From Penicillus capitatus (Eukaryota; Plantae; Chlorophyta), in contig OZ287694.1 in NCBI GenBank assembly GCA_965649825.1, positions 1,673,197 through 1,737,196 on the forward strand: a stretch of 64,000 nucleotides of DNA, read 5' to 3'. Below the pieces are notes generated by a model. The model made no database searches, was not told the origin of the DNA, and saw only the letters and a list, made by a program, of their open reading frames with translations. The position numbers and the translations under genes are program-made. The stretch's first letter is position 1. Every line of letters begins with the position of its first letter. Positions 953-55,621 of the stretch are shown one piece after another.

Positions 953-3388
953 TCAGTGCGTTTTTTGTATCTGCTGCAAGTGATCATCGATCCTTGCGAT
1001 CATGTCACGCATCGATTCGAACTGCCGATTGAAATTCTCGGTACACTGTTGCATCTCTCTCTGCATCATTCTCTCAAATACAAGCAGCTTTCTGGTCTTC
1101 CGTTCTGGAACCTGTTCAACTGTCTGGCTTACAGGAACTAAATAGTGAAAGAAATTCTGTCGATTTTGAGCACCCAGATGAAATCGGCCAAAGTAGCTCT
1201 GGCTTGCCTTGAGTGAGTGCCTTGGCCTATTCTCCGTAATTCTGCCATGACAGAGTTTCCTACACAGGATGGTTGGCTAAGACCTCTGGTCGTCAGTTCA
1301 TTTCTGTGATCACTCACCAAATGATGCGCTGTAGAGCAATGGGGATCCTGAGGGTACACAGAGTGGCTCCTCCCATCTTTGCCCGACATTTCATCAGCTC
1401 CTCCCTCTGAGTGAATCGGACGCTGGTGTATGTGTCGCTCAGGATGGCGATCAGCAGGCTGAGCATCACAATCCCGCCAGCGAAGATGAAGCCGTTGAAC
1501 AGGAGTGATCTCCACACGCCAATGAATGTATGCGTTGATCGAAAAGCCTAAATACACACTGTCATGTGAGTCGGAAATTGACTGCCCAAGGGATGGCACC
1601 TTCTCTTCGAAGTTGCCGGCGGCTGCCTGGAAGAGGATCTTCAGGACATGAAAGAATGAGCTGAGGTCTCCATAGTCGTCATCGTCTCCGCGACATCTTG
1701 TCCTAGCATGCCCCGTAAGCATCTCGTCTGGTTCTGGTGCTACGCCATCGCTGTTGGTATCGTCATAGAACTTCACATTGAAGAGGATTCGAAACGAGAA
1801 AGCGAATCCGATGAGGATAGATGCGAGCAGGGCACAGAAAGGGATGATGGCCCTGAACGAGTAGATGACCACCGAGACGAAGTGTCCGATTCTGTCGAAG
1901 GGACGAAGAGCCTCGACGATCTGTACGAACATGCACATACAGAAAGCGGTATCAGTCACGAATGCACGAGGGATGGGAGATGGGTTACCAGGATCCAGCA
2001 GAGAATGCATTCGACTGAGGTCAAGAAGGCAGAATACTGGTTGTGTTCTGAAGAACCGGCGACGTGAATTGCCAGCAACAGAGTGACCACCGCGCTGAGG
2101 AATCTGCATCGCACGTACGTCAGATCCTTGACCGGTGTACTGACGTGTGGCGCACTTGATCTTGGAGAAACGGATGGTCATTGTGATAAGGGATAACAAG
2201 AAAGTTGCGATGATTAGGAATAAGGAGAACCGTTCCTTCCATTCATCATGCTCTGCGTGTCTCAATCCATGGATTCCTGTAAAGAGCGAGAAGAGGACAG
2301 CTGTCGCTATGTCCAGAATCAGGAGGCAAAGGAATCGACTGTAGAGCGAGTAGAAGACCCAGTTGGAGATGGATCGAATGGACTCTGATTTGAAGACACG
2401 TATTGGAAGGTTGGATGACGCCAGCCGTTCCAACAGATGCTTCCGACAACAAGACCATTTCTGCAGCTTTGAAAGAAGACTGCTATTGTTTGCCGAGGAA
2501 CCGGATCGGATGCGGTTCAGATCAATGCAGAAGAACTTTGCGACAGCAACGACCTGGGGTACTGATTTCTTGTCCATCTCTGCAGCATATTGTTCGCTAT
2601 TGTCCATCCAGAAGTCTTTCGTTGCTGCACTGTTCGGCATCGTCCAGTCGTCCAACTCCTCATCCGTTGTCATCGCGATCGGACACCTGCCATTCTTCTC
2701 GAACAGCGAGTATGGGACCATAAATCTCCCATACTCGAATGAGAACTTGTCATTCTCCAGGTAATCTGACATCAATTCTGGGAACTGTTCGATTAGAGGG
2801 AACACGTAGTGCGTCAGGATGGCACGAGATACCTCCACTGACAGAAGTTTCTTCGCCAGGGTGTCCAAGACGAACTTGGCCACGTCAGCAGACCTTGTTT
2901 TTATAGCCCAGTCCAGAGTGGGACATTCCCCTGTGTCCACGTCGACGAAAAGATCGCGCTCACTGGCAGATTCCATGAAGAGCTCCGCGCCGTGCAGCTG
3001 TTGATGGACGATGGCGTCGCACAGCAGAGGGACGCCGTTGCTGTTTTCGGAGCGAATGACTTCGCTGCCGTGTTCATCAATCAACCTGCACGAACGCACG
3101 CTCGGTCCTTCTTCCCGAATGCTCTTGTCTTTCTCTGTCGCTGTCTCTTCGGTCAAGAGTGGAACGTGGATGTCTGCGCTCGTCACGATGGAGATGCCGT
3201 CGGCGTAACCTGAAGGGAAGGCATGAATTGCGTCTCGCGGTCGCGCGGTTGGGGCACCTTGTCTTGAGGCGTCCCTTGTCGTCTCTGCCTCTAGTGTTCG
3301 TTCGTTCGCATTCCGTCTGTTCAAAGACCGCTCGGCAGATTCCATGACTCCTTTCTCGACATCGCCAGGCACGTAACGGCTGGCCATG
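953..3388 (-). CDS. TRP-type cation channel with degenerate ankyrin-like N-terminus (paralog TRP-1, most divergent), spliced
   Basis: Ankyrin-like NGVPLLCDAI/TLDWAI, S4-S5 linker DRIGHFVSV, pore helix and filter FQAAAGNFE, S6 LSLLIAILSDTY, FHYLVP motif plus coiled-coil tail. Introns include 1548-1599. Stop TGA at 953-955. Likely ATG at 3388 (MASRY). Confidence 0.85.
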
Positions 3389-6300
3389 ATCACAAGCACC
3401 GTTTCTTAAACGTGAGGACGATGTTTTATTGCCAAGGTACAGTGACCAGTTCTGAGATGGAGACCGACAGCACGGGCCCGTATAAGTAGTAATGCGACTG
3501 GTGGAAATGTCGTCGACGGCTAAGTAAATGGAAGTGATGCGGAATCGACGGGGTGCTTCCGAAACGCGGCTCACGACTTTTCTTTATTATGCCTTCGCTC
3601 TTCCAGTGATCAGTTTTGCGTAGGTCATCTGCTCTTCCTCGCGCGGAATCTTATGACAGTTGTCCTGAATGAGTAGCCTTTACGCAACTATTGTTTGTGT
3701 GGACCGGAGAGTCAGGTGGGATTCCTTGAATGTCACAGGACTGTTCGAGTGGACGGTCTCTACACCTCGGTATCTGCGCTCGGAGACATGCCCGTCTGGT
3801 GAGCGACAAGACCTGGATGGCAGTGAGTGCTTAATGCTGCCGAGAAGACTCGGTGTTGTCCTGCATGGATCCTGTCGATGTGCATCCAGCAGAAGGCGAC
3901 GCCGTGGGCGACTCAAGCGATAAAAGGGACGTGCAGAGTGGTCACTTTGCGCCGTCCACATCACTCGGAAATCAGCCACAACACAAGACAGTTCCTAGAA
4001 CTCTTGTGCTGCCTCGTCGACTGATGTTGATGGGGCCGTTCGACGACACACCCAACCAATTGATTCACAGTGACAGTATCACTAAAATCAGAAAAAGGAA
4101 GCTAGTAATGGATTCTGAGACATGCTGCCACAGATAAAGAGTCTCGAAGGAACAACGGCCTCAGAGAAACTGATCAACTACATGCTTGCCGGGGTAGATG
4201 CAGCGAGAAAAGACAGCCAACAGTAACAAGTGGATGGTAATGATGAATGTAGACATCGAGAATGTAATGGATGGATGCCTCCTCGATCGCGTCACATCAC
4301 CATCTCTGAGCAGAGCGCGTGGAGGGAGCGAACGCGTCGAGCTTCTGCGGTACATGACCCACCGTATCCTCGATCCTGCCCACGCTCTTCCCTCCTCACC
4401 ATCCGCTCTTGTGGCAGAGACATTCGACGCTCGATGTGCGCCATACAAGGCACCAGGGCTGTCGATCACTTGAGCGACTTGCGACCGCGCTTGCGAATAC
4501 GCCGTCGAAGTCGTTTCGTGCATTTGAGCCGAATTCTCGACACACAACGTGAGAAGAGTCCCGCAGGCGCCTTCAGCCTCCGTACCTGACTTGGATTCCA
4601 TAAGATCCCGCGGAAGCGAATGAAGCGCTGTGTTCAAACGTAAAAGTCGTCAGTTAAAAACACTCGATCGTTCACATGTCGCTCGACAAATGATGGCATC
4701 GGTCGACACAATCAGCTGTGACGTGCGGGACGTCATCTGCGCGACGATACCGTAAATGAATGCCCGGTCATCGACAATGCACACGGCATCGAGACACACA
4801 ACGAGGACGGCACCTTTCCGTCTGTCGAGGCCGTTCTAGATCCGCTATCTCGAATAAATCCAAAAAAGCGGATGGCAGTGCCACCGGTCGTGCAGTGGAA
4901 CGACAGGCGAACGTTGCAGGCAAAGTCTCGCATTCGGCGGCGCCGTCTCACCCTGATTCGGCAGAGACCTCGTATCGACATCCGCAAGATACGCGTCTCC
5001 GGCGGCTTTCTGTCTCGAGCCACTGCACAGCTACGAGTGACCGATCTAGCCTGGGCAGATTCGGCAGTCTTCTTAATGATCTATTTGTTACAGTAGCATA
5101 CAGTGTGCGTACATAGACCAACGACACGATGCAGAATCACTTGGACTTGCCCTTCTTCGGGCTGGCGTCCTGTCACAAGGCAAAGACCCAGTCAGGAGCT
5201 GCCTCTCTTTAGTGGAAACGTGCCTTTCTGTGCCACTCCCAGTGAGGTTCTTTCGTCCCGAAGTCTAACGCCTTCCTCGCTAGCTTGTGTGCCTCGTCTG
5301 CAGAACCGCAGTCAGTGTCTGTCGTCGTTGCACGACACACCGTTTAGTTTCCTGCTTATGTGACAGAATTCAATCTTGGAAAACAGTGCCACCAGACGCT
5401 TTGACTGTTTTTGCACAAGATAGCGACAGATGAGCACCAAGAATCACTGGCTCACTGTGATGTGGTGCTGGACGATGTCTTCGCTGCGGAGTTTGGTCTT
5501 TCTCTGTAACAGAATCATTCACTCGCAATGGCGTCATTCATACGTTTAGATGCCGACGTTTAAGTGCTGAATCACTATCAGCGCGTCGCCCAACACGAGC
5601 AGTTTGTCGACGCCGAAGCAGGATGCCATGAGCAGACCGAGATTCAAGGCGGCGAACTCTGCTCCCAAGGACGACGAGATATCTTTGCCGCTTCCGCTGC
5701 CGCACCTACGACAGAAGGATGTCGTCTAACCGTGCAGCTATCAGAGGTACTAACCCCATCAGACGGCCGTCCGGAGAGTAGAGTACGGCCCCTGCCCCAT
5801 AGTCCTTGCTCTGATGCCTGGTTCCACAGTGAACGCCTTTCGCACACAACGAGAGCACCTGAAGCTTCCGTCGATGTAGAGTCGGCTGTATTTTTTGCTC
5901 CGTCTAAAACGCTGACAGCGTTGGCGGCATATCGCGCGAATGAATGGCTCACGGGACGGCTTGTTGGCGGACGGCCTGCCTTGTGGCTGCGAATATGAAT
6001 GGGAAGATACGACTGGTCATATTGGTCAAACGCTCAAAGAACGCAGAACGTTTCCCGTCATGGCGCAAATGGGCCAGTCGGAGAGGATATTCAGCGGCAT
6101 GACTGGCCACGCAAACAGCGAACGGTTAGCTGGGGCGCTGTAGACTGTCTAGTGGGAGCTCTGTCTTTCGATCCGTCGCCATCACATCAGGCGAAGTGAT
6201 GGATGGAACCTCGGCTGTCTGAACAGATTGCCTCGAAAGATTCGGATTCTCTCTCCGGACGACGGAGAGCGTTCAAGAGCGGTGCAAAGTAATACAGCAT

Positions 6301-9973: not shown

Positions 9974-12341
9974 TCAGGCTGAGGATGGGTCCATCCTATC
10001 CAGCTTCTGGAGGATCTGCTCCATAGCTCTCTCCAATCTGTTCATTCTCGCTTTCAGTCCTTTTATCTCGCCTAAGGCTGCAAACTGCTCCTTGAATCCT
10101 TCCGCGTTCTTTCGAGCTTCAGACTGGACGATTCTTTTGATGGCCACCAGTCTTCCCTGCCATTCGTCGACAGTCGGTTCTAATTCGCTGCCATCAACCG
10201 GCACCAGATAATGGAAGTAGAACTGGCGCTGTTTAGGAACGAACTCTGGGACTGGTAATCCTCGAAAGGAGAGGTAACCGCGAATAAAAGCTCTATATCC
10301 TGCGTTCATTTTTTCCCTACGTCACCATCAAACATTGTCACCAAGCTTCTTCGATTAATCACGGATGAGCCTACAGGATATGTGCGATCAAATGAATATT
10401 TGGAGCCTGACACTTGGCGACTATCTTGAGTCGGAGTTTTCTCAGTTCTGCTTTCTCCTTTGCACGGACTCTGTCGTACGTATCCGTCAGGATGGCGACC
10501 AGTAGATTGATCAGCAAAACCGGTGCAATGCAGATGAAAGTAGCAAACAGTAGAGCGGCCCACACTGTAAGAAGATCACTCGAGGATCGAAACATCTGCA
10601 TCAGAACCACAGGCACAGCATTTAGGAGATAGCATGGAGAGTGGACAAGGACTTACGTCCACCTCGAAGTTTCCGATACACGAGTAGAAGAGGGTTTCCA
10701 TTGTACGCGGAAGGGAGCTGAAGTTGCCATCGTCATCTTTGATGGATCCGCTGTTGAGAAGCGCCATCAATGCAACCGAGTAGCCGAAAACCATGACAGC
10801 GACCAGCAGCAGAAGATGCCAAGAGTCTTCGAATGCTGAATGCACCATCGAAATGAACGGCCCCAGTCGCTCAAATACAGTTGACTCACAGGCTAACTGG
10901 AGCACACTTAGGAGGCACTCGGATGCGTGAGTTTGAAAGGTACCGAGGAGTACTGCAGAATGCACGAGGCAGATGTCAGAAAAGCCGTGTAGTTGCAGTA
11001 ATGATCGTCCACACAAGTCAGTATCAGCAGCACAGCCAGCGCAATCTCCATGGACACAATGCAGAACCTGAATCCATCCATCCGAGAGGTTAACAGGCAG
11101 ATCGACGTCATGAGTGGCTTCTTGCCTTGTAAATGTCGGATAGTACAAAGTGCTCAAACCATGCGTCACACATGAAGTGAGCAACAGTCCCATCGATGGC
11201 GGCCAGCGTTCTGCTCCGACCTCGTCTCGACATCGATACAGCTGGGAAAAAATCGTGAAGGCCAGAGTGCCTGCGCCTTCCAGGATGATGACGAAATAGT
11301 AAGTGCGGCGATGATAATGAAACCACCAATCGACCAAGTTCTTCAGCGTCTCAGATTCGAAGACCTCCACTGGGAAGTCCTGTCTGTAGAGGAGTACACA
11401 GAGAGGTTCTTTTCTGCAATTGCCTTTTGTCGAAGCCGTCGGGTCTTCGACGCAAAGGAACTTGGCGGACATCTCGATCTGAAAATCGATTGACTCCTTC
11501 AAGTCTTCGGAGTGCTCTTTGCAGTGTTCTACCCAGAACGCCCTCGCCGTTTCTGCGGTAAGTCCTCTAAATCTCTCCGGCGGCTCATCTGATGTCATGG
11601 CGATCGCTCGCTTGCCATTCGTGTCAATCAGCGAACGCGGCACCGAAAATCTGGCGTATTCGAATGCGAAGCTGTCGTTCCTGATGTAGTTCTTCATTAG
11701 ACGGGGAAACTCTCTGCTGAGAGGGAAGAGGTAGTTGGTCAGAATGCAGCAGGACTCCTCCATCGGCAACTTCTGCTTTGCCACGCAGTCGAGGACGTAT
11801 TTCGCGACCACCTCTGCTCGGCTGCTCATCGCCCAGTCCAGCGTTCGGCAACAACCGGTTTCAAGGATGACAAATCTGTCATGTCGCCGGGCAAGCTCAA
11901 GCAACAGCCACGCACTCTCAGGCTGTCTCTGGACAATGGCGTCGCAGAGGAGTGGATTGCCATTCGCACTATTCGCCATGTCGATAAGCTTCTCTTCATG
12001 ATCGATGATCAAACTGCCGCGAACACGATCCGTCGTTGGTTGAAACGTTCGTGCGTTTGGGTTTACCGTCGCGTTTCTTCTTCGGTCCAGTAGAGAACCT
12101 CGATGTGAGGCTGATGCGCCTCGTTACGTGGGACATCATTGTCGCGTGCAGGAACAAAGAAAATCGAAACGCCACGTCGAAAAAACGCGTCCAGCCAACG
12201 CATCCGTGCGACGCATCCGGGCAGCGCGTCCTTTCGGTAAACTGTTTGTGCACAACCTTTACGTCCGTTTGGATACGCCGAACGCGCCTTCGACGGAAGC
12301 GCTGGCGTTATGCTGATGGTGTTTCCGACGTCACGAGTCAT
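9974..12341 (-). CDS. TRP-type cation channel paralog TRP-2, spliced
   Basis: MTRDVG start, WTEEETRR then intron 12014-12066, ankyrin-like NGNPLLCDAI, GC-AG intron 11068-11125, ERLGPFISMV, FSSLPRTMETLFYSCIGNFE, INLLVAILTDTYDRV, FHYLVP..EWQGRL, coiled coil, stop at 9974. Confidence 0.88.
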
Positions 12342-13799
12342 GCGTGCGTAACAGTTCGTCCTTCCTCGATTCTCTAGCCGACAAGCTCTCGCCGAAGAAC
12401 GAATGAGCGTCAAGATTAAGCTGCTTGCATAGCCACGCGATGTATGTATATGACTGTACAATTACATGGCTTCGGATTTTACATGTACCATAAGCAAACA
12501 GAGAACAAGAGCATTCATCGCAAGGTTCACAAATTGACAGGAACACGAAAGATCTAGTCATTTAGGAGAGAAGAGATTGCAATGAGATCGCGAAGCTGCC
12601 GTCTGAGCTCGCATTCTAATCGAGGACCGTACTGATGGCTAGTCAGGAACGGAGAGTTTCCGATACACACAAAGAATGTGCAGGTATGCTGAGCGTTCCA
12701 GAGCTGTAAGCATTGGGACACTTAAGATTGGCTTTTTGGATTCCACGTCTCCTCGACTGCGTCTCCGAATATTGCTTCTTATGTCTACTGACTCCAACAT
12801 CAATAACTTGGAGTTCATGCTGTGTGTGCCTGCGTCCTTCTACTGTTGGGAAGAGCGACTGACAGGTGCTTCGAAGAAGGATACATTGATGCTATATACT
12901 TATCCTCTGTCCACACGACAAGATACAGGAGGCTAGGGTTTCTTAGTCACTTTGTACTCTAGGATTCACAGATTACTGATGATCCACTTCTCTTGCATAC
13001 TCCATCAGACGCGAGGACATCTCTCGAAGAAAACTCTGGATTTGAGAGGAGACTGCATCTTCAAATGGCAGATTTGCTCCTGCACTGTCTCATGTGACAT
13101 CATAATCGACGCCTCAATGAAATCGACGGACAGCCTTCCACTGAAAGACTGAATCATTCTCAGTCAGTGTATCTTTGACAGAGAGCATCGATTGCTTGTT
13201 CATATGTTCGAGGTGCAGAGATTCACAATGCTGCGGAGCCTTGACGCAATCGAAAAGCTATCATCGGCAGATTTTGCAAAGTGCTGAACATGCAAGGACC
13301 GGTAGGCAGTGTATGCCCTGAACGTTCCTTACTATGTATGCGATATACCCCCATCGTCAAGATGATCTGATCAAAACACAGGATTAACCGTCGTACAAAC
13401 ATAACCGACGTCGCACCGCACAATGCGCATTTCAGCATTTGTCCTTTCTGTCCGTCCGTCCGTCGACTTCGCCAAACGCAAAGAGCTTCGTCGCGGTGCT
13501 TACTCTCCGAACGAGATAGCCATGCGACGGAAGGTGTTCATCTCGGAACGTCAACCTTCGTGCGCCGACGCACGCACAGCTTGTGAGGTTATCCGTCTTC
13601 GGGAACTGTCCCTAGGTCGACGAAGTAACCTGAACCCTCCGAAAACAGCGAACGCAGCGATGGAAGTCCGATGCGCTTTAACGGTGGACCGCGTTCGCAT
13701 TGCCGAAGTCCGATACCCTGACAGAGGGGTCGGCCAGAACTGGGGCCCGTGACACTACGGTCCGCGACCTGCGCTTGCCGTTGCGCTATCCGTCCGGAG

Positions 13800-16762: not shown

Positions 16763-19135
16763 TCATGTGGCGGCGGACGGGTCAATCCTATCCAGCTTTT
16801 GAAGGACCTGGTCCATAGCTGTCTCCAGCCTACTCGCAGAATTCTCCAGACTGTTCATTCTCTCTTTCAGTCCTTTCACCTCGCCTTCTAAGGCTGCATG
16901 CTGCTCCTTGAATTCTTCCGCGTTCTTTCGAGCTTCAGACTTGATAGCCTTTTCAACCGCCATCAGTCTTCCTTGCCATTTGCCGACACGCGATTCCAGT
17001 TTGCGGCCGTCAACAGGAACCAGATAATGAAAGAAAAAATGATCCGGTTCAGAAGTGACAGCATAACTTGGCAATCCACGAAAGGAAAGATAGGCGTGAA
17101 CCGAATACCTGAGAGCCGATTCCACTTTTTTTCTGTGGCACCATCAATCATTGTCACTGAGCTTTTAGAATAATCTCTGATGAGCTTACGCGATGCGTTT
17201 GTTTGAGCCACGTTTAAAACATGGACAGTTGGAGATGATTCGGAGTCGGAGTTTTCTCAGTTCTGCTTTCTCCTTTGCATGGACTCTGTCGTACGTATCC
17301 GTCAGGATGGCGATCAGCAGACTGATCAGCATAATCGGTGTGAAGTAGATGAAGGAAGCGAACAGCAGAGTGGCCCACACTGTAAGAAAGTTGCTCGAGG
17401 ATCGAAACATCTGCATCGGAAAGACAGGCACAGCATTTAGGAGATAGCAGAAAAGGTGGAGATGGACGTACTTCCACGTCGAAGTTTCCGATGCACGAGT
17501 AGACGAGGGTCTCGATTGCACGTGGAAGGGAACTGAAGTTTCCATCGTCATCTTTAATGTACCCGCTTTGGAAGATCGCCATGAATGCCACCGAATATCC
17601 GAGAATCATAACAGCGACGAGCAGCAGAAAACGCCAGGAGTCCTTGACTGCCGAATTCACCATCGAAATGAACGGCCCCAGTCGATCAGATGCTTGTGCC
17701 AAGCGGAATATCTAGAGATCATGAATGCACGCACTTTGAAGACAGTCAGACAAGTGTCAATGTGAAAGGTACCGAGATCCACTGAAGGATACAACCAAGA
17801 GATAGTAGAAAGGCGGGGTATTCGTAGTCGCTAGTTGTGATGCAGATCTGAATGAAAAGCACATACTCAAGAAGAAGTATGCTGAGCCTGCAGACATCCA
17901 TTCAACAGACTGGTTTGTGGATTAAGACAGTAGATGGTTTCTTGCCTTGCATACGACCAGTAGAAGAAAAGGCCTCCTTTTCGAAGTAGCATCGAAACAG
18001 ACAACAGTCCTAACAGAAGTGGCCGATACGCTGCTCCGATGTCGTCTCTGCGCCAGTACAGTTGGGAAGAGACCGTGAAGATCAGGGTGAGTATGCTATC
18101 GATGGTGATAAAGAAATAGTATAAGTGGCGCGTATAATAGAACCACCAATCGACCAAGGTCTTCAGCGTCTCAGATTCGAGAATCTCTATTGAGAGATCC
18201 TGTTTTTTGAGGTAGATAGAGAGATGAATTCTTTCCTCCGTCAAAAACGGAAACAGACTGCAGCAAAAGAATTTGGCAGCGACCGTCGTTTTCATATCTG
18301 ACAACTGCCGCAGATCGTTTGAGTGTTCCTTGCATCTGGCCATCCAGTAAGCCTTTGTTCCCTCACTGTCGTCCATTGCCCGTTTGTCCGGAGGTGTGTT
18401 TGTCATCATAGCAATCGGATACTTTCCGTTTTTGCGGATCAGAGAACGAGGTACCGTGAATCTGCCGTACTCGAACGAGAACTTGTCGTTCTTGATGTAT
18501 TCCGTCATCAGGTCAGGGAACGCTCCGATGAGAAGCGTGAGGTACTTGGTAAGAATGTCACAGGACTGCTCCAGTGGTAGCTTCTGCTGCGCCACGAAGT
18601 CGAGGACGAATTTCGCAACGACCTCGACCTGGTTGTCGATTGCCCACTTAAGTGTCTGACACTCTCCAGTCTTAGAGTCGACCAGCCTCGCAGGTATCAG
18701 CACCTGCTCAAACAGCAGCAATGCACAGGCAAACTGTTTTTGCGCAATGGCGTCACAGACAAGCGGAGCGCCATTCTTATTCACCGCGTGGACCAGTTCC
18801 TCTCCGTACTTAGTGATCAATCTGTTACAGTCACGCTCCGTCATCGGACGAAACGTTCTCTGGCTTGGGCTTACCGTCGTGTCTCTTCTTCGGTCCAGCA
18901 GTCGACGTCGATGCGAAGCCGGCGCGTTACGATGTTCGAGGCATCGCTGTCTTGTTCTAAAACGGAGGATTTCAAAACGCCGCGTCCAGAAGAAGACGCA
19001 ACAGGTCGACAGGTCTGCCCCCGAGTAAGTCATCCGTGCATTACCTTCATGTTCGTTTGCTTTCGGTGCATCCGAACGCGCCTCTGGTGGTAGCAGTGGT
19101 GTTCCACTACTGCCTTCGCCGGAGCCACGGTTCAT
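16763..19135 (-). CDS. TRP-type cation channel paralog TRP-3 (sister of TRP-2), spliced
   Basis: MNRGSG start, CWTEEETRR then intron, NGAPLVCDAI, GC-AG intron 17888-17945, DRLGPFISMV, FSSLPRAIETLVYSCIGNFD, ISLLIAILTDTYDRV, FHYLVP..KWQGRL, stop at 16763. Confidence 0.88.
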
Positions 19136-19639
19136 GTGTACGCAGCAGTTCGTCTTTCCTCGATACGCTGCTCGAAAAGCGTTCGCCGCAGCACGGATGA
19201 GCGTCGAGATGAAGCTGCTTTCACAGCCACGCGAAATGATGCGCGCGATGGTGTCGGCAGTCCTTTAATGATGGCTGTCACCATCAATAACAGGTATTGA
19301 GTGCAGAAATTACAAAACGATAATCTATCATCCATTTCACCAATGCGATAAGCGAGCAGTATGGTGTCCCTCATCCTACCAGGCTCAACGTGTCTGTAGA
19401 TGTTGATATCGTCCAACTGATGATTTACAATTGGGATCGCACGCGTTCATTAGTCTGCGCCCATTGTCTCACCTTTTCCTCCACCACCCTGACAGAAACC
19501 TTGCGCAAGAACGACAAGACTATCCATGTTTCAGGAAGACAAAGTGAGAATTCTTGAGAAGATTGTCGACCGATGATTGACGGAGTGGATGAACACTGAA
19601 GATTTGGATACTCGAAAACACTCTATTCTTCCCCAGCGG

Positions 19640-19909: not shown

Positions 19910-20530
19910 AAACGTTCATCAGTCGGAGCAGCTGACGTCATCCGACCTCTCCATACGCATCTTCAAGTCGGAGTTCGGATGGACCCTTTCCAGTTGGGAG
20001 TTCCAGTCACGTTTCCATCTACTGTGCTTACTGTATCCTTCCTCTGGATACACTCGCCGTTTTCCTCTCTTTGATGTTTTCCGGCGGTATGGTCTGCGAG
20101 ATATGAATCCGATCTAGCTTGTGATAACTGACTGGTACGTAAGAATTCTCATCATCTCGTGACACTTGCCGCGTGATGACGGTAGAAGTCAGGTTTTCGA
20201 AGATCAAAACAGTCAATGGTAAAGATAAAAGGGAAGAAAGAGTAATTCTTAAACGTAGGACTGTCAGCATTGTGGTCACTGAATGCATAGAAAGAGCATT
20301 ACCAAAACGGCAGTCTTCCTCGCAGATTGTGCATCCAACATGCAGTTTAAAGTGTTTGGTTCAACACAACTAACTCAGCTAGTATTACGATAGTACACTC
20401 GGGACACCTTTCTGAAAGAAGTGGATTCAAGGTCATATCGATTGTCTTGGTTGGAATCCTGTGCAGGTTTCGAACGAAGAGCGCACGCAATGAAGCTGGG
20501 TCCAATTTCATCAGCATTCAACGGTTTGCA
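19910..20530 (+). pseudogene. Inverted decayed TRP fragment (TRP-1-like, pre-S1 to S4-S5 linker)
   Basis: HQSEQLTSSDLSIRIFKSEFGWTLSSWEF vs TRP-1 HLLERLASSNLPIRVFKSESIRSISNWVF; TVEVRFSKIK vs TIRFSKIK; weak KLGP. Contains stops and frameshifts. Confidence 0.55.
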
Positions 20531-21498
20531 TTTAACACGCAGATCTGCCACTGAACCTATTGATCGAGCCAGACAGCTTTTTTGAGTATTTCTCTGTTCT
20601 GCATGTCCGAGAGATTAGACAGTACAAGGTAAGCGCTTTCTTCTCCATGGACACGAAGACTGAAGGAATGAAACAGGAACTATTGTGGAAGGCATGTACA
20701 GAAATGGATTCCAAGCAACGTAGCGACACATCGTGCATCTCCACTGAGACATGAATAAAAGAGTGAAGCTCTGATGCATTCCATCAGATCCAACCCGAGA
20801 ACCATATCTCGTGATCTGATTAGCTTTCTCCGAGTGTGCCCATGGCTCTCTTTGCGCAATCCGTAGAGCGACAGAAATTTTTCTGGTCTCTTAAGGTTAT
20901 CTATCGCACTGTCGTCAGCAGAGACCAACAGATAAGACATCACACAGATATACGATCCCTCCCTGCGGAGGAATCGCAAACAGAGCTGTATGTGAAAGAA
21001 TAGAAGACAATTTGTCCTCTGGCTCACAGAAGTGATTCCCACCAGAGGAGTGATCCGCTCGGAGATTGATCTCTCGGATACTCGACTCTTCGCCTCAGCG
21101 CTTTGCTCTTTTTGAACGCTCTCGGTGCGAAAAGGTGAGAGTTAATCCGTTTTCACTGTCCATTTCTTTCCCCGTCACGGAAACGCCCAGATGCTTCTGT
21201 TGCTGAGATCGTCGTTTTCGTTAGCCCTTTTGCACCTCGCACGAACGAAGCAGACCGAAAACCTAGCTTCGGGTACTCGTAGTCGATTACCATTCGCCCT
21301 CGCGACCATCGCTTGGCAGTGACCAGACATTGATAGGCCCGTCGTCCGTCGAACTTTGCAGAAAACGTGTCGCCGTTGCAGGTGACTGGGAAAAACTGAC
21401 GAGACCTTGAGCAAGGGAGGTTGGTTGTTATGCTCTGCGCTGTCACTGTAGGTGAAGGACAGTTGGTAGCTGCACATTTACATCGCGCGGGAGACCTA

Positions 21499-21521
21499 CT
21501 AGCTTCCGGGTCACGTCAGAA
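21499..21521 (+). promoter_or_regulatory. 23-bp motif conserved upstream of both serpins, containing a bZIP-type TGACGTGA (reverse strand)
   Basis: CTAGCTTCCGGGTCACGTCAGAA is identical at 21499-21521 and 55461-55483, about 100-140 bp upstream of the ATGs. Confidence 0.45.
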
Positions 21522-21617
21522 GCAGGTTAAAAAGACGGCTGTCGCGGCCGTTATTTGTCATCGTAGCCTTTTCGTTTTGCCCTATCTGCGACGGCGTTCC
21601 TTCTAAACTCGAACAGC

Positions 21618-22856
21618 ATGCATTCGGTTTTCATCGGCGAACCGTTATCGACTGCAAACTCGGTGAACGCCTTCGGGCAGAAACTCTTGTCCGAATGGAG
21701 GCCGCAGCACGTGGACGAGAATCTCATCTTCTCGCCCCTGTCCATAGCCGTGTGCTTCCTCCTCGTCTACAACGGCGCTCGCGGCGAGACCAAGGCCGAA
21801 CTCGAGAATCTCTTCGAATTCGATGTGTGCTGGTGCTTCGCACGTGCGATTTGGCTGAGCACCTGTGTCTAGGATGAACGCGTCAGAAGCAGCCTTTCCT
21901 CCAAGGCGACGGCGTACTCGGGCGACTTCGTCGCGAAGATGGCGAACCGCATCTACGTCGAGCAGTCGGTCAAAATCAGGAAAAAGTACGTGAAGCACGT
22001 CGGGCCGGCCAACGTCAGATCGGTGGATTTCCGTCGATCCTCCGAAGACGTCCGCGTCCGAATCAACGCATGGGTGAATAAGAGAACGGCAGGGCTGATT
22101 CCGGATATCCTTCCACAAGGAGTCCTCTCAACCGACACGGCCCTCGTCGCCGTCAACGCCCTCTACTTCAAGGGAAGCTGGAAGACGTGTTTCCCCGCGT
22201 ACGGGACAAGAGACGACATCTTCCACGCAGTCGGTGGCGACCAGAGGGTGCCCTTCATGTCGATATACGTTGAAAGCTTTCGCGTCAAGGATGTGCGTGC
22301 GTTGGACGCCCTTCTGTTTGCCATGCCGTACAAGGGCGATGCATTCACGATGTATGTCCTGCTGCCGAACAAGCGCGACGGATGGAAGACAGCAGAACAG
22401 GGCCTCTCGGGTCAGATCGGCTCACTGTTTGCCGGCGGGTTCCGCGATCGTGAGGTCAACGAGCTCAAAGTGCCCAAGTGGGAAATGGAGCAGACGCTAG
22501 AGCCTCTGAAAGACATGCTTGTCAAGCTCGGCCTATCGACTGCCTTCTCGTCTGCGGCAGATTTCTCTGGAATCTCTCGTATTACACCGTTGAACATCTC
22601 CAAAGTCATTCACAAGGCCAAGATCGTAGTGGACGAAGAGGTCGAGATTCTTTACGGCCTCGGTGATGACTGAAGTGTGTCGTAGGGCGCGGAAGCGTCA
22701 GTGGCGACGGTCGTCGAAGGATTAGAGGGGTTTGGTTCCTATTCCACTTTTCCTCCCCCGTTCAACATCATCGTCGACCGTCCTTTTCTGTACTTCATCG
22801 TGGACGAAGCAGACGGGACGATTCTCTTCCAAGGAACGCAGACAAAGATTGAATGA
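21618..22856 (+). CDS. Serpin A (intracellular, no signal peptide), 2 introns (21825-21872, 22641-22685)
   Basis: NLIFSPLSI, MANRIYV, INAWVNKRTAGLIPDIL, VNALYFKGSW, VPFM, LPNK, PKWEME, HKAKIVVDEE|GAEA hinge, VDRPFLYFI..ILFQG. Confidence 0.95.
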
Positions 22857-24389
22857 CGATGGAGAAAGGCATTGATCAAGAAGTCTCTTGTTGAGGAACG
22901 TTGCTCTTTTCAGTACCTTAGATGGCATGCAGTTTTGCTTTAATGTTTGTCAGAAGTACGATGAACCAGTCCTTTCATCAGTGGCAGACGTTGTGGTCGA
23001 TCAGTTCGACATTTTAATCTCAGACATGAGCCACATTAGAGTACGACGCTCGCTTCAAGACGCATGACGCTACAGAGGGAACGGTGTTTTCTTCTAACAG
23101 CGATTACTTTGACCTTGACAACCCCTTGCCTTCATCCCTGTTTTGGTCCCTTTAGCTCTTCGAGGTAACAAAATGCACGACAGAGTGACATAAGCCACAC
23201 AACTGCGGAGCAAAACTCCACGCTCTACGCCAGCATTCGAATAATGTCAATAAAAAATCTCGAGCTTTGGAATGTCGAAGTTAGAGGACGCGCGTCACTG
23301 GGGTAAACGAAACGATTGTGGCCTGGTTTTACTGGGTTTAAGAAATAAGTAATGGAGGAGTGAGAAGACCGCTGAGAGTGTTTCTACGAGGCAATACACC
23401 TATCACAGAAGTACTGAACCAGTCCGTGCTGTCGAATCGCGACCAAGCAACGATAAGTAAAGAACAAACCCTAATGTGTAAGAGTGAGACAGACCATCCG
23501 TATCTTTGTAAGATGCATGTAGGGCTTCGTCTTCAGTGACCGTTCGGCAGAGATCTGCCAAAACACAACGCACGTCTGGTTTCGTGTGTTCGGAGAGAAC
23601 AAATGCATAAGAAGTGGTCGGAATTATGGTTTAGTGTGACACGTGCGACAGTGGTCGTATCAACGTTCTTAGTGATTCTGGTGTTGCGGGCAAGAATGCC
23701 ATCAGAAAAGGCATAAGTACTGAGGCGAGGACAAAGGACATCTGACACATTGGTTTGTCGCACATTTCTCTTGTTCGAAGGAGAGGTGATCTCAACTGCG
23801 TCGCTCTCCGAATGCTGTTGGACGCTTTTTCGAGGCTATTCCTGTCGAAGCACTCGCACTCATCGCCCCAACCGCGAGCTCGAGCACAGCGCAATGTAAA
23901 AGCATCGGCGTAGCACAGCGAACCGCGAATGATCGGAGCAGCGGCGCCGTTGTCTGCTAGATGGCCACGCTCTCTGCAGGATCGAGGTCGGTCATCTGTG
24001 GAGACCGCGCAAATTCGTACAGAGGTCTCGACACAGTGGAGAGATTTCCGGTGACCGCATCGCGTGGATATACTATTCAAACAACACTCCTTCACAATAC
24101 CAATGAGCGTTCAGCGTCGTTCATGCGTTTCTTGCCCAGGTAAACTTGCGAGAGATTTGTGTGCTAAGATCTGTCTCCGATGAGGAATTGAGGAAACAAT
24201 GAAATGCGTGATTACTTAGAAATCCGATCGGGAAGGTCTTTCGCAGCCACCGTCGGCATGGAATGCCAAAATACCATCGAAAGTGTCAGCAACAACCTCC
24301 CGTTAGACATGCTTCTTGGTAAAGGAAAGCAAGACGAAAAGTAAGATATGTCGCTGCAAAGCAGATTGACTTGCATCCTTAGCAGTCGC

Positions 24390-26969
24390 TCACGCTGAAG
24401 AAGGCTCCAATCTGGCAAGTTTCTGAAGGATCCGGTCAACGGCGTTTTTTATCTCGCCCACGCTTTCTTCCATGTCGCTCATTCTTGTCGACAGTGTTTT
24501 CATCTCACTCATGCTCTCTTCCAAGTTTCTCACTCTGTTGAACATTGTAACAAACTCTTCCGTCGTTTTCTTACTGATCTCTAAGTAACACGAAGTCAAT
24601 TGACAGAACTCTGGCTTGTAATAGTTAGTTGACCTGCGAAAGCTTTCTCGTTCTTTTCTGCTACGGACTTGATAGTTCTTTCGAGTGCGATGAGTCTGCC
24701 ATGCCACTCGTCGTCAGAAGACTCTCCTTCGGTATCTTCGGGAACCAGGAAATGGAAAAAACTGTTCCCCGTCACGCTAATTTCTTCGAATCTATAATAC
24801 TTCCATAAACTGGACAGACTTCGATTTTCATTGAAAATCGAAAAGCACCTATAAACCAGAACATATTCGAAGACCACAACTTCCCCTTTCAATTTTTGAG
24901 TAATCTTATTACCCAATATACGCAGCAATGAAAATGCAGTCGTACGTTGCTTGCAGTCGATGCATTGACTGTTCTACCTTCTCCTTTGACCGAACTCTGT
25001 CATGTGTCTCGGTCAAGATAGAAACAAGCAGACTCATGAGAACAATCGGTCCGACGTAGATGAAGGAATTAAACAGTAAAGTTCTCCAGACTGTGAGAAA
25101 GTCACCAGCAGGGCGAAGCATCTGCACCGCGAAAACTTCGCTGGACGATGCCAGAAGAGCCGTTACGTAGAGGAGCTTACGTCAGTTTCAAAGTTACCAA
25201 GACCGGCATGGAACAGTGTCTCTAACGAACGTGGAAACGTATCAAAGTGGTCTCCGCCGCCAGATTCACCGTCGAAGAGAACCATGAACGCTGCGGAATG
25301 TCCAATCACCAGCAAAAAGCCCATCATCGCGAAAGGCAGCGAGTCCTTCATTGCATAGCCCGCCATCGAAACGAACGGTCCCAATCGGCCGAACGGTCGA
25401 AGGGTTCGAAAGAACTGATCCACACACAAGAAATCGCGTTACTGACGAGAGTACGAGAATGAACTTTGGATGAATCTTACCACGAGCCAGCAGACGATGC
25501 ATCCAACAGATGCCGTGAAAGATGAGAAGGCGGTGTGATGGTCAGTGACGCATGTGTGTACGAAGAGCACCATATCGATAACTAACATAGTCAACCTGTA
25601 CACAGACAACAAAGGGACAGACGAACTAAGATCATCGGTATGCATCACCTCAGCATCGACTGAGACATGTACATTACCCACCAATTTACAGCCAATGTTG
25701 CTGCTACGAGTGCCATTACAATTGCACGCTGGATTAGCCCAACATCGTCGTCTTGACGTCTGTACAGAATGGCAAAGCTCGTGAAAGTCACAGCAGCCAC
25801 GACATCCAGTCTAACGCCCAGCAAATAGACGTCATGGCAGCAGCTAAACAGCCAATCGATGTAAACTCTGACTGTCCTTGATGTGAGAACTTCTTCAGCT
25901 TCTGATACGCCACGAGCACGTAACCTCGCTAATCTATCCATACTACGACAAAGCACTCAGTTTAGTCGAAACGCTACTATGGACGTACTCGTCGTCAATG
26001 TGGAGGCCGAGCAATGCCCGAAGACGAATGCATGAGAATTTTGCCGCTACTTTGATCTGCTGACCCGTAGTGTCCGACAGTTTCTCGCCACGCTTGCTGT
26101 TCTGGATCCAGAGCGCCTTTGGTGCATCACTGTCCATAGCCTGCCAGCTCTCTGGATAATGATCGTCCGTCAGCATCACAACTGGAGTCTCTCCGTTTCT
26201 GCCGAACATGGCCTTCGGCACTTCAAACCTGGCGTACTCCATTGTGAACTTATCTTCGTTCAAGAAACGCAGTATGATCTTGCAGAATCGAGAAAGGAGA
26301 TCCAACACGTTTTCATCCAAGAGTTTGATTGTCTCTGCCACTGTCGTGTACTTTCCTGTCAGTTTGTCCAGAACGAATTCGACTTGAGCTTCAGATCTGT
26401 TGGCGATGGCCCGGGACAAAAGATCACCACCTTCGCATTTGAACGTCATGGGCACCCCATTGCTCTTCGCGTAATCCAGGAGGATGTTTGCACAGTCGAG
26501 TCGGCCTAGTTCCACAGCATTCCAGAAAATCGGCGTACCCTCTGCATCGACAGCGTGGATGATGCGCGTCCCATGTTCAGAAATGAGTCTGTTCAGTTTG
26601 TGAGACGGTTAGGCTACCATGCAGAAGACGAAACGGTATTTACCGTACGGTGCTCTCCAGTGTCCACTCTGACGGAGGGCCCAGAGTCCATATTCTCGTT
26701 TCGCCGGATTCGGAGTCGCCGTCATCTGTGGCAGCATGCAACCGTCACCTCCGCGACGAGGAATGGCGAATGGGACGGGTTGTCCACTCACCAATCGCCG
26801 TCGCTTCTTCGGGTTGTTTCTCTTCCTCGGTCTCCGTTGACAATGCCGGCTCTTGTCGTGGCGCATCATCTTGCTGAAGCGGATGTGAAGACGCCTTCGA
26901 GGAATCGACGTGTTCGAAAGGCAAAAACCCCTCCGCTTCCTCGTTAATCTCTTGATGCGACGAAGACAT
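24390..26969 (-). CDS. TRP-type cation channel paralog TRP-4, spliced, convergent with serpin A
   Basis: MSSSHQ start, PPSEWTLESTVR then intron, GTPIFWNAVELGRLDCA, GRLGPFVSM, FDTFPRSLETLFHAGLGNFE, MSLLVSILTETHDRV, FHFLVP..EWHGRL, coiled coil, stop at 24390. Confidence 0.88.
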
Positions 26970-27204
26970 CTTGCTTGCTCGTCTTGCAGCGTTATCGTAG
27001 AAAGAGGCGGTCGTCAAACACAAGAATCGACAACCGGTTCCGTCGATGACTCCTGACGATGACGCGGCATGCATGCATTATTTTATCGCTATCCTAAGTA
27101 CATGAACTATCATTGAGCGTTCCATGACGCATCTCTTAATGCAAACTAAACCACTGGGCGCATTTGAGGCTTCTCATCCGTTACCAGGATAGCCCAAGCA
27201 GACT

Positions 27205-37834: not shown

Positions 37835-40323
37835 ATGGCTTCGACAAAGGGCAGCACTAGCGAGGCTTTATCCGAACCTCTGCTTCGGGGACAGGAGCAT
37901 TTGACGAGCATCGATGTGAAACAGTGGACTGCGACATCATCGGCAGCAGCAAACAGTGCGTCGACAACGCAACAGCAATCGTTGCTCTGCATTCCACATC
38001 AGAAGACGCGATGTTGAAATCCGGACCCCTTTCTGCAGGTGTCGCAGCAAGAAGCACCGGTTCCTCGGCGAATCCGGAGGAAAAACGTCCGACGAAATGG
38101 ACACCTGGGCTAACGCAACAGTGCGCGTCTTCCGGCTTTACAGTGTCAGCGACGGTGTTGTGTGTTGGGCAGATTTATGTTGCAGTACGGTGGATGCATG
38201 ATGGATGTCGTCGATGAGTACGGAGAACCCTTTTTCTGGGCTGCCATCAAAAAGGGTCAACTCGACTGCGCAGGAAAGATCGTCGATAAAGCAAAGAAGG
38301 AAGGCGCTCCAGTGAAGTTCCGACACGAAGACAGCGATCTGCTGGAATGGGCCATCGACCATGACGCGAACAGGGAAGTCAGATTCATCCTTGAAAAATT
38401 GGCGCAGAAATATGCATCCGTGGAAGAAACGTGCTATCTGCTAGAGACCCACTTGCAGGCCATCAGCGAGAAGTTCCCGAAACTGATCGGCGACTTTCTG
38501 AAGCGGGATCGCTTTACCATGGAGTACGCCAGATTCCTAGTACCGCGATCGATTTTTAAAACAGCTAACGCATTCTCCGTTGCCATGATCGTCCGAAAGA
38601 GACTGGATTGTTGGGACAGCATGAACAGCGAAGAGGCAAAGGATTTTTGGGTCCAGAACTGTTCCAAGAGAGATTCGAATCTCCTCATCGATTCTGATAT
38701 GCACGTCACGGCCATTGCCAAGTTCTTCTGCATCGGACAATCGACTTACAGTCGGAAAGCAAGGTGCCATCCAATGATGGAAACCGACTGCCTTTCGAGA
38801 TTGTGTGTCAATAGAAAGCAGAAGCATCTTTGTCAGTGCCTCCATGAGAACCTCCCTGTGGAGGCATTCGAATCTGACACACTTAGGGTCATGACGGCGT
38901 GGTGGTTTCGATTCTTCCGTCTAAGGGTTCTCAAGAACGCTCTGTTGGATTGTTTGTCACCCGTAGCGCTGGCTTTCTTTATCGATCATTATAGAAAAGA
39001 CACGAACGACGGCGTCGATAGTCGTCTGTTTTCGGCTGGACTCCTGGTCCCGGTATTTGTATCACAGTTGGCAGTAAACCTCGACTGCCCCTCACACTTA
39101 AGGCAAGCATCGCGTCATCATTCAGAAGGCTGTATCTAGATCGTGGTGGCCCCCTACAGGCATTTTGTCATTTCTACTGAAGTGATCATATTGATTCACA
39201 CCTGCATCTGGGGTCATGCGACCCATATTTCTGCAATCCTCATATCGATTACATGCATTTTGATATGGATCTTGGTACTCTCTACCATCGTGTCCTTCGC
39301 TTGATGTGTTGTTCTGTGCTTTCTAGATATTTCGCTGTTTACCGTTCATCGATGGCATGGGTCGTATTACTTTGATGATGAATTCAGCATTTAAAGACTC
39401 TCTGTGCGTCTTGTATCCAGTCACGTTGATTATTAGCGGTTATTCCATGGCGTTTACGGCGCTCTTCAATGATGTGTCCAGAGACAAAGAAGGAGAACAT
39501 TTCGTAAACTTTGGGCGAGCATTCGAGACACTCACTTATGCAGGCATTGGGAGTTTCGATGTGGATGTACGTTGCCATACATCTGCTCCCATCTCTTGTG
39601 ATGTGTCGATCCAGATGTTTCGACACTCGAGTAGCCTTCTTGCCGCCTGGGCTGCTATACTCTTCGGTTCTTTCGTCTTCATCGGACCAATTGTGCTTCT
39701 CAGTCTGCTCGTTGGTATTCTGACAGACACATACGACAGAGTTCGATCAAGCGAGAAAGCAGAGCTGAGAAAGTTCCGAATGCGCATCGTGGTCAAACTT
39801 CAGCATCAGTCCAATTCGATCCTCAGTGCAAAACAAGTGTGCGTCTATCAAAAAATGCAACAGAAACTCGAACCGTTAGCTCAACGCTTGTGTTGCATGG
39901 CAGGACGCAACGTGCCAAAGACTTCGGCATTCTCAAAAACGAAGAATTGCGTGAGAGCAGTGAAATTTTGGAGTGTCTGGACGGGACGTATTTCCATTTT
40001 CTGGTGCCTGCCAACGACGAAGAAGGTGAAGTTGACAATGAAGAATGGCAGGGTAGACATATGTCGCTGAAGAGGACCATCACGTCCGAGGCACAAAAGA
40101 ACGAGAGAGTGTCGAAGGGTGAGTGAGGTCCACCCACGTTAAGCAGCACGAGCTTTCGTCGTTGGCAACGTCAGCTGCTGTGCGTGCAGAGAATTCGAAG
40201 AATCTGGCAAACAAGTTGGAGAACATGGAAGGGCGACTGGAGAAAATGGAAAGGTCCATCGATCGTTTGCTGACCGCTGTCGAGCAGAACCGTCCACAGT
40301 CACTGTCCCTCGGATCATCCTGA
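37835..40323 (+). CDS. TRP-type cation channel paralog TRP-6, spliced
   Basis: MASTKG start, KWTPGLTQQ then intron, GEPFFWAAIKKGQLDCA, LLEWAI, GC-AG intron 39103-39158, MGRITLMM, FVNFGRAFETLTYAGIGSFD, LSLLVGILTDTYDRV, FHFLVP..EEWQGR, coiled coil, stop at 40323. Confidence 0.88.
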
Positions 40324-43949: not shown

Positions 43950-43999
43950 TCTTTTTGGCGTTGACATAAGCAGCTCTCGTGGGGATTTTTTTCAGGCGG

Positions 44000-55460: not shown

Positions 55461-55483
55461 CTAGCTTCCGGGTCACGTCAGAA
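55461..55483 (+). promoter_or_regulatory. Second copy of the conserved serpin upstream motif
   Basis: Identical to 21499-21521. Confidence 0.45.
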
Positions 55484-55621
55484 CCGGGCTACAAAAACAC
55501 CTGTCGCAGAGGTTATCCATCCTCGCAAGCCATTCGCAGCCATTCGTTCCGCGACGGAATTTTCTCCAAATTCGCCTAGGAAGAATACACTCGTGGATAT
55601 CTGCGGCAAATCGTTTTTACC

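Follow-up and report, generated by a model that had tools for sequence, protein, structure and literature searches.

Inhibitory-type serpins with a conserved scaffold and hinge and a hypervariable reactive-centre loop in a green alga

The 64,000-nucleotide (nt) stretch of Penicillus capitatus contig OZ287694.1 analyzed here (positions 1,673,197 to 1,737,196; hereafter the window) is eukaryotic DNA with a G+C content of about 50% and carries two intact three-exon serpin genes, serpin A and serpin B, both on the + strand. Comparison with ten further paralogs indicates that segmental duplication gave rise to a lineage-specific family of inhibitory-type serpins, of which the two genes are members and in which the scaffold and the hinge are conserved and the reactive-centre loop varies at or above the neutral rate, a reading to which we assign a probability of roughly 0.7. 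Serpin A encodes 381 amino acids. Its exon 1 (21618–21824) runs from the initiator Met to ...LFEFD, starts at helix A without a signal peptide, and is followed by intron 1 (21825–21872, 48 nt, GT..AG). Exon 2 (21873–22640, 768 nt) encodes the serpin core through strand s5A and ends with ...HKAKIVVDEE, the last two residues being P17-P16. Intron 2 (22641–22685, 45 nt, GT..AG) lies in phase 0 between P16 Glu and P15 Gly. Exon 3 (22686–22856) encodes hinge residues P15-P8 (22686–22709, GAEASVAT, with Ala at P14), the hypervariable loop (22710–22763, VVEGLEGFGSYSTFPPPF), whose putative P1 is Glu in the register of its relatives or Gly by the alpha1-antitrypsin count, and the conserved C-terminal strands s1C/s4B/s5B with the stop codon (22764–22856, NIIVDRPFLYFIVDEADGTILFQGTQTKIE), which match the serpin signature.

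Serpin B encodes 369 amino acids and has the same organization. Exon 1 (55622–55801) was delimited from the gene model and paralog comparison, exon 2 (55849–56616, 768 nt) ends with ...HKAKIIVDEE, and intron 2 (56617–56664, 48 nt, GT..AG) again lies in phase 0 between P16 and P15. Exon 3 (56665–56826) encodes the hinge P15-P8 (56665–56688, GTEAVAVT), the hypervariable loop (56689–56736, YSIEDETCAEVRYPPY) and the conserved C-terminal strands with the stop codon (56737–56826), also with a signature match. Translation of 22686–22775 in serpin A gives GAEASVATVVEGLEGFGSYSTFPPPFNIIV and that of 56665–56748 in serpin B gives GTEAVAVTYSIEDETCAEVRYPPYNITV. The loop sequences of the original prediction are therefore exact, its range for serpin A being one codon long (the V of VDRPF), and the conserved flanks that it described on either side of both loops, HKAKI(V/I)VDEE and VDRPFLYFIVDEAD, are present. 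The exon 2/3 junction is supported by the related serpin P0005, an uninterrupted open reading frame (ORF) that reads straight through VDEE-GTEAAAS without an intron at this point. The window contains no serpin gene beyond A and B, and scans of it for Rfam families and tRNAs returned no matches. Each gene lies in one copy of a duplicated segment of about 6 kb (20793–27144 and 54945–60534) that comprises the serpin, its non-coding flanks and a downstream gene. Self-BLAST aligned 21401–23226 with 55360–57182 at 76% identity and 24937–26700 with 58421–60196 at 74%.

The assignment of both products to the serpins is supported at the level of sequence and predicted structure. The Pfam Serpin profile (PF00079) matched serpin A over residues 15–376 (E = 1.5e-85) and serpin B over residues 6–367 (E = 1.6e-86), covering profile positions 2–366/368 of 370. 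Sequence matches to solved serpin structures reached E values down to 2e-49, Spn42Da being the best such match to serpin B. The AlphaFold2 model of serpin B had a mean predicted local distance difference test score (pLDDT) of 89.8 and a predicted template modelling score of 0.89, and only residues 320–336, the segment that contains the loop, fell below a pLDDT of 50. Searched with Foldseek, this model gave TM-scores of 0.82–0.89 to solved serpins, including uncleaved ovalbumin, native MENT, native antithrombin and PAI-2. Serpin B is thus predicted to adopt the native serpin fold with an exposed reactive-centre loop. At s1C-s4B, the signature I(I/T)VD(R/H)PFLYF(I/V), which corresponds to the PROSITE-type serpin pattern, matches in 10 of the 12 paralogs, including A and B, with PY in place of PF in the two others (L003 and L008). 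The family proteins begin directly at helix A and have no hydrophobic N-terminal leader: their maximal 12-residue N-terminal hydropathy is 0.5–1.8, compared to 3.05 in P0005, a secreted relative. An upstream signal-peptide exon was considered and rejected, as the conserved block upstream of the genes has no common reading frame and serpin B has an in-frame stop upstream. Lacking a signal peptide, the family proteins are probably intracellular. The best named serpin relative came from the EukProt proteome of Caulerpa lentillifera (43% identity), and for a CPSF73-like gene on a related contig the best named match was to Ostreobium quekettii (67% over the N-terminal half), with other green algae ranking next. 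These two genes place the host, with moderate confidence, close to the siphonous Bryopsidales. An MFS (major facilitator superfamily) transporter gene beside the serpins carried no taxonomic signal, having only lineage-specific paralogs and remote bacterial relatives.

The exon-2 ORFs of the window match proteins on contig ctg340529 of ENA metagenome assembly ERZ25074695 (1,837,688 bp), on which the window corresponds to positions 452126–516125, reversed, as placed by its exact overlap with locus L004. Using exon-2 ORFs as handles, we fetched nine 20-kb loci and rebuilt ten more intact paralogs from them. The comparison set of 12 paralogs comprises A and B (winA and winB in pairwise comparisons), seven more on the same contig and three from two contigs of a second sample, ERZ26696514. 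Nine serpin copies lie at about 389–668 kb of ctg340529, a span of about 280 kb, on both strands and interspersed with genes for transporters of the major facilitator superfamily (MFS), ion-transport genes and retroelement ORFs; a 13th, more distant copy was located on a different contig of the first sample. All 12 paralogs are intact, with both introns at identical positions, 44–51 nt long and bounded by GT..AG, and exon 2 is 768 nt long in 10 of the 12. The two intron positions are shared by the distant relative L012. A tblastn search with the exon-3 peptide in the window and the nine loci found no alternative loop exons, only one copy per gene. The orthology of L003 with one second-sample gene was also considered and found unclean, L008 being the most similar gene and L009 having the better collinear flank; we therefore call L003 and L008 closest between-sample relatives, not orthologues.

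The original prediction had described the loop as hyperdivergent on a conserved scaffold, and this pattern holds throughout the enlarged family. Serpins A and B are identical at 257/349 scaffold residues (74%), 6/10 hinge residues and only 2/16 alignable residues of the variable loop after P8. Across the 12 paralogs, the mean pairwise identity is 0.17 in the loop (a 23-column window), compared to 0.74 in the scaffold and 0.77 in the hinge; of 359 windows, that of the loop has the lowest identity and is the sole outlier, the next lowest non-overlapping window having an identity of 0.50. The ten additional paralogs, whose collection had been recommended, all share the conserved body and the variable loop. 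The variable stretch extends from P7 to a prime-side Pro run, spans about 13–21 residues and has no sequence conservation. After P8, the loops read VVEGLEGFGSYSTFPPPF in A, YSIEDETCAEVRYPPY in B, VVEIPAGCARYSTSPPPF in L001a, VSALEGCAPYSTSPPPF in L002, SFEVNCTCAAVRPPPY in L004, VMGPVLETCCLRPPPPPPPPF in L001b, ATCMYAKGLRSPQH in L006, VYSRQRCYRFPPPLF in L005, AIIAVATSAVIGPPPF in L003, AIIFKRTAAVMRPPPL in L008, ALRMVCCGLRPIPPQF in L007 and FIGVFATSISIPF in L009. On the prime side of the loop, exon 3 of L001b (L001 19304–19480) has eight consecutive Pro codons, (CCT)7 followed by CCG, compared to three in the other copies; this looks like repeat slippage altering the length of the loop. Elsewhere in the body, exon 2 of L002 (9935–10726) carries a 24-nt in-frame insertion whose product is a tandem repeat, REEFT-NEFT-DEFT, within a surface loop.

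Such a contrast would also be expected if constraint on the loop were simply relaxed, that is if its sequence were irrelevant, because the proteins are non-inhibitory or because only length and flexibility matter, and drifted neutrally while the fold was kept. We consider this explanation unlikely as a whole, and the composition of the loops is a first point against it. Cys makes up 5.6% of loop residues (11/196) but 0.3% of scaffold residues (14/4198), an 18-fold enrichment, Pro makes up 20% compared to 3.6%, and Asp, Asn and Lys are nearly missing from the loops. A loop Cys occurs in 8 of the 12 paralogs (at window positions 56710–56712 in serpin B, for instance), usually a few residues from the putative scissile bond, a placement also found in several intracellular animal serpins. 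A related pair of serpins that keeps its loop also speaks against neutral drift. The secreted P0005 and its counterpart from another sample, L012, which is spliced at the same two intron positions, are about as diverged overall as A and B (77% identical), and still have 11 of 15 loop residues in common, VSAR|SAV among them. Hypervariability at like divergence is therefore specific to the expanded signal-peptide-less family and is not a property of the whole serpin lineage. The P0005 ORF itself occupies positions 641–1852 of a Logan contig of 1958 nt (L011), with 52 nt separating it from an unrelated upstream ORF (1–588); since its close relative L012 has both introns, this contig is either transcript-derived or the product of intron loss.

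All 12 paralogs retain the hinge, whose sole role is in inhibition, in the form E-[EKQ]-G-[TA]-[EK]-A-x-x-x-T, with A, S, T or V at P11-P9. Inhibitory serpins have a consensus hinge of Glu at P17, Gly at P15, a small Thr or Ser at P14 and small uncharged residues at P12-P9. By this comparison A, B and their paralogs appear to carry a hinge of the inhibitory type, the exceptions being the P14 Ala of serpin A and a Lys in each of L001b (P13) and L002 (P9). The Ala at P14 of serpin A had been singled out in the original prediction and is indeed unique, the other 11 paralogs having Thr there, from which it differs by one base (GCG instead of ACG). Val or Ser occupies P14 in known serpins, which suggests that Ala at this position need not abolish inhibition, and the Foldseek matches include a structure entry whose title names a crystallised P14-Ala antithrombin variant.

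The position of the scissile bond is a more delicate matter. Counting 17 residues from the P17 Glu, as in alpha1-antitrypsin, reproduces the P1-P1' pairs proposed earlier, G-F in A and T-C in B. This register is probably off by one, as Arg is the 16th residue from P17 in the outgroups P0005, P0014 and P0017 and in the paralogs L005 and L008, where it is followed by Ser, Thr or Cys, which suggests that the scissile bond of this lineage lies one residue earlier. Serpin registers are known to differ by one residue, for instance in the alignments to Spn42Da and SERPINB1. At the 16th residue, serpins A (GLE|GF) and B (IEDE|TC) both have Glu, the other copies having Ala, Leu, Gly, Cys or Arg; in this register the putative P1 of the two window copies would be Glu. 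The likeness of the acidic IEDE-TC stretch of serpin B to the loops of CrmA and PI-9, also proposed earlier, holds for a few residues only, and the sister paralog L004 has SFEVNC|TC at this place and no acidic motif. The dipeptide Leu-Arg is lacking at the 15th to 17th residues from P17 in A and B; it occurs further on the prime side in L001b, L006 and L007, and nearer the hinge in L007 and, at P6-P5, in L010.

We next compared the rate of change of the loop with several neutral proxies. Five phylogenetically independent pairs were used for summed contrasts of the proportions of non-synonymous (pN) and synonymous (pS) differences. The Nei-Gojobori method gave a pN of 0.41 and a pS of 0.42 for the loop, compared to 0.075 and 0.214 at non-synonymous and synonymous scaffold sites, 0.073 at non-synonymous hinge sites and 0.24 in introns. 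Loop pN is higher than pS in the scaffold (P = 9e-8) and than the divergence of introns (P = 4e-5), and three contrasts with few or no indels give 31/108 for the loop versus 128/736 (P = 0.005). Codons that differ at two or three positions make up 38% of the total in the loop but 4.8% in the scaffold; the elevated loop pS is therefore for the most part artefactual, and the Nei-Gojobori ratio was set aside as uninformative. At true four-fold sites, those preceded by two unchanged bases, divergence is not raised in the loop (5/23, or 0.22, from only 23 sites that lie mostly in the Pro run) relative to the scaffold (147/786, or 0.19).

A codon likelihood model of the MG94 type, with the tree, kappa and branch lengths fitted on the scaffold, gave a ratio of non-synonymous to synonymous rates (omega, or dN/dS) of 0.44 for the scaffold, 0.38 for the hinge (likelihood-ratio test against 1, P = 6e-5) and 4.3 for the loop with the scaffold synonymous rate imposed (likelihood-ratio statistic against omega = 1 of 152), rising to about 10 in the loop core. 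In sliding windows, omega was 3.7–4.8 in the loop and did not exceed 1.07 elsewhere. Two secondary patches with omega close to 1, residues 160–179 and 190–204 of serpin B (window ~56145–56204 and ~56235–56279), fall in what we take, by predicted strand order, to be the s3A-s4C loop/s4C and the s3C-s1B region, near the loop in serpins; these patches are possible exosites.

Because the MAFFT alignment of the loop was unreliable, we added a comparison of DNA in which the same gapped global alignment was applied to every segment. Identity was 0.62 in the loop, 0.75–0.77 in introns, 0.73 in the 3′ untranslated region (UTR), 0.71 in the 5′ flank and 0.89–0.92 in the adjacent coding blocks. Pooled loop DNA is more diverged than non-coding DNA (P < 1e-4), the excess over introns, UTRs and synonymous sites being about 1.7–2-fold. 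The difference is clear in two older pairs and in the youngest trio, whose loops are 0.77–0.81 identical compared to 0.86–0.96 for their introns. Such an excess speaks against neutral drift alone, as does a hinge constrained to the same degree as the scaffold. In summary, the scaffold, the hinge and the C-terminal strands are under purifying selection in every copy, and the loop diverges at or above the neutral rate, faster in several contrasts.

It was further suggested that diversifying selection has directed the loops toward different proteases, and several of our results weigh against that step, most of them in favor of relaxed constraint. When the loop is given a rate multiplier of its own, which fits at 2.9, its omega falls to 1.31 and is no longer distinguishable from 1 (P = 0.21). 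L003 and L008, the closest pair between samples, have the same value, 0.30, for loop pN and for scaffold pS, and loop DNA is no more diverged than introns and UTRs in this pair and in winB-L004. Among loop codons with a single difference, the ratio of non-synonymous to synonymous changes is 16:8, below the value of about 2.9 expected from site numbers. Codon inspection revealed that loops change by blocks of adjacent substitutions (9 of 12 bases in L001a), by one-codon indels and, in L001b, by (CCT)n expansion, for which reason models of point substitution fit the loop poorly, and single-step codon models overstate omega when changes are multi-nucleotide. In-frame indels also make the loop alignment uncertain: MAFFT misplaced one L002 codon, and the winB and L004 loops can be aligned with two compensating indels to give 10 differences rather than 16. 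Finally, gene conversion lowers divergence outside the loop and therefore inflates every comparison of the loop with the rest of the gene. The regional dN/dS analysis that had been called for gives a correspondingly divided answer: windows above 1.1 are confined to the loop, but within the loop itself the ratio is about 1, as in the Nei-Gojobori proportions. Likewise, the proposed diversifying selection agrees with the excess of the loop over neutral proxies (omega of 4.3 relative to scaffold sites, DNA identity of 0.62 compared to 0.73–0.77) but not with the loop-internal estimate, and positive selection on the loop is partly supported, though not formally demonstrated.

Several observations point to gene conversion. 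Over 400 nt comprising 5′ flank and exon 1, serpin A matches L001a at 99% identity, a value that drops to 67–90% thereafter. A single nucleotide separates intron 1 of serpin B from its L005 counterpart, and in intron 2, L004 agrees with L005 and not with its sister B. The tree topology shifts between thirds of the serpin gene, and in a permutation test on polymorphic sites 5 of 66 pairs have runs of identity longer than in all 2000 permutations (minimum attainable P of 0.0005). Gene conversion has thus partly homogenized scaffolds, introns and flanks. One could therefore argue that the loops merely hold old divergence and that conversion has homogenized everything else, its tracts stopping at the dissimilar loop, a possibility also favored by the preference of the likelihood model for a 2.9-fold loop rate multiplier over a pure omega effect. 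Old divergence should have raised the four-fold sites of the loop as well, which is not what the few available sites indicate. Moreover, loops within clades are still recognizably homologous and differ by local blocks, and a search for donors of loop segments by shared 11-mers in 270 kb of sampled DNA yielded only chance-level matches, plus sharing within clade I. Conversion of this kind would explain the contrast between loop and scaffold but not the biased loop composition. We regard it as somewhat unlikely to account for the pattern by itself, and it can coexist with a family of inhibitory-type serpins whose loops vary at or above the neutral rate rather than replace it. Both processes, neutral loop drift and conversion outside the loop, may account for part of the pattern. 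Our results also carry a methodological caution: tests of the loop against the rest of the gene were overwhelmingly positive while dN/dS within the loop was about 1, a gap that arises from indels, multi-nucleotide changes and gene conversion.

A last alternative holds that these duplicates are unexpressed or on the way to becoming pseudogenes, decay being visible first in the loop. Retroelement ORFs close to several copies and the fairly high scaffold omega of 0.44 are compatible with this view. It is, however, highly improbable given that reading frames and GT..AG splice sites are intact in 13 of 13 copies, that loop indels are exclusively in-frame, that omega is well below 1 in both scaffold and hinge, and that the C-terminal strands following the loop are 87–97% identical at the DNA level.

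Our preferred interpretation is therefore a family of inhibitory-type serpins with a constrained body and a hypervariable loop. Under the standard suicide-substrate mechanism of serpins, a protease would cleave the exposed loop of each copy at P1-P1′, and the cleaved loop would insert into beta-sheet A, dragging the covalently bound protease along. Differences between loops would give the copies different protease specificities, and an ancestral Arg at P1, in the register of the relatives, would have been replaced by Glu in A and B. A free loop, a conserved hinge, a biased loop composition and a conserved loop in a relative are as expected of a panel of inhibitors with different specificities. 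A bolder proposal, which we hold to be quite unlikely, is that the family constitutes an immune-like or wound-response repertoire of cytosolic inhibitors in a giant-celled, coenocytic green alga. The ancestral Arg-P1 loop would have been repeatedly rewritten, including to the rare Glu-P1 form, in an arms race with pathogen proteases or alongside diversifying endogenous cell-death proteases, and diversity would be maintained by frequent gene conversion acting with a modular loop exon, which the phase-0 intron at P16/P15 sets off.

Several features surrounding the serpin genes deserve mention. The conserved non-coding block lies about 120–260 nt upstream of the serpin start and is common to A and B (~21400–21500 and ~55360–55480) at 69–89% identity, compared to about 50% in the sequence nearer the ATG. 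In the 3′ flank, B and L004 share about 200 nt at 98–100% identity (window ~56990–57180). Both stretches may be regulatory elements or recent conversion tracts. ORFs with RVT_1, rve and Integrase_H2C2 domains are located a few kb upstream of three serpins (L003 2592–4883, L005 4546–5157 and L006 5769–8886), and retroelements may have helped disperse the serpin duplication unit. In the second sample, the two ends of the L008 locus carry, in opposite orientation, a CPSF73-like (Beta-Casp) fragment and a 363-amino-acid ORF (123–1037 on the + strand and 20150–20735 on the − strand), which suggests that a large inverted duplication of about 20 kb flanks the serpin. Within the window, four apparently intronless MFS transporter genes are arranged in tandem (42316–54542) with 73–86% DNA identity. 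They belong to a family of more than 20 paralogs on the contigs of this organism, whose only named relatives are bacterial (Pseudomonas and Variovorax, 24–25% identity), and a metagenome match labelled "ACS family tartrate transporter-like" is 28% identical; the family may be an old bacterial acquisition that subsequently expanded. A second segmental duplication relates 9977–12440 to 16769–19234, and also to 1138–3399 and 38162–40070, at 65–77% identity and contains ORFs with weak Pfam Ion_trans matches. Since Ion_trans-like ORFs also adjoin the serpins of L002, L003, L007 and L008, the duplications seem to have involved serpin, ion-transport and MFS genes jointly.

Hypervariable serpin loops reportedly received their classical description from Hill and Hastie in 1987. 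The closest animal parallels to the family described here are the rodent and bovine SERPINA1/SERPINA3 clusters, which likewise consist of clustered duplicates with a conserved scaffold and hinge and a loop that is the hotspot of divergence. Selected sites are enriched in the serpin loop (PMC12646145), and that article cites Barbour et al. 2002 for a "hypervariable reactive center loop". Eight bovine SERPINA3 genes differ in their loop (PMC4593666). On the other hand, SERPINA1 and SERPINA3 are secreted vertebrate plasma serpins with another exon structure, whereas the family of this green alga has two tiny introns and no signal peptides, and a loop-internal dN/dS above 1, the counterpart of the positive selection inferred in the vertebrate loops, was not obtained.

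In Spn42Da of Drosophila and serpin-1 of Manduca, one scaffold is also combined with many loops, and the last exon, as in the genes described here, encodes the loop with s1C/s4B/s5B behind constant core exons. Spn42Da has two core exons followed by loop exons, with the intron located after P8 (PMC4006314). These cassette-exon serpins have many loop exons per gene; the algal genes have one each, behind an intron at P16/P15, and diversity is therefore generated by whole-gene duplication and not by splicing.

Acidic P1 residues are found in CrmA (Asp) and in SERPINB9, or PI-9 (Glu). Tick Iripin-4 has Glu at P1 and inhibits granzyme B only weakly (PMC10167670). Like these proteins, A and B are of the intracellular type and have an acidic residue at or next to the putative P1 with Cys just after it. 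The likeness to CrmA and SERPINB9 is limited to a few residues and implies no family relationship, and by the alpha1-antitrypsin count P1 would be Gly in A and Thr in B. Should it be Glu in both window copies, as is possible, this would be a rare residue for P1 among serpins.

Within the green lineage, the obvious comparison is with plant serpins (AtSerpin1, the "LR" serpins and rice OsSRP), which are mostly devoid of a signal peptide and include recent paralogs named by their loop residues. The algal proteins resemble them, as well as the clade-B intracellular serpins, in starting at helix A without a leader. Some plant serpins inhibit endogenous cysteine proteases such as metacaspase 9, and a single conserved intron is typical of their genes (PMC3534287); serpins are also known in green algae (Roberts and Hejgaard 2008, cited therein). 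Unlike plant serpins, A and B lack the conserved P2-P1 Leu-Arg at the canonical position, the algal genes have two introns instead of one, and identity to named plant and algal serpins is low, the Caulerpa match being the best. In the library searched, no paper that mentions Caulerpa, Ostreobium, Bryopsis or Bryopsidales also names serpins, and the accessions of the two metagenome assemblies gave no literature match. The retargeting of protease inhibitors by gene duplication has its textbook illustration in serpins that carry hypervariable bait loops on an invariant scaffold, and if the copies described here are active inhibitors, their 12 loops constitute a natural panel for learning which proteases such algae must control. 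Serpin families with hypervariable loops are already known in animals and plants, and the present case extends them to a green alga.

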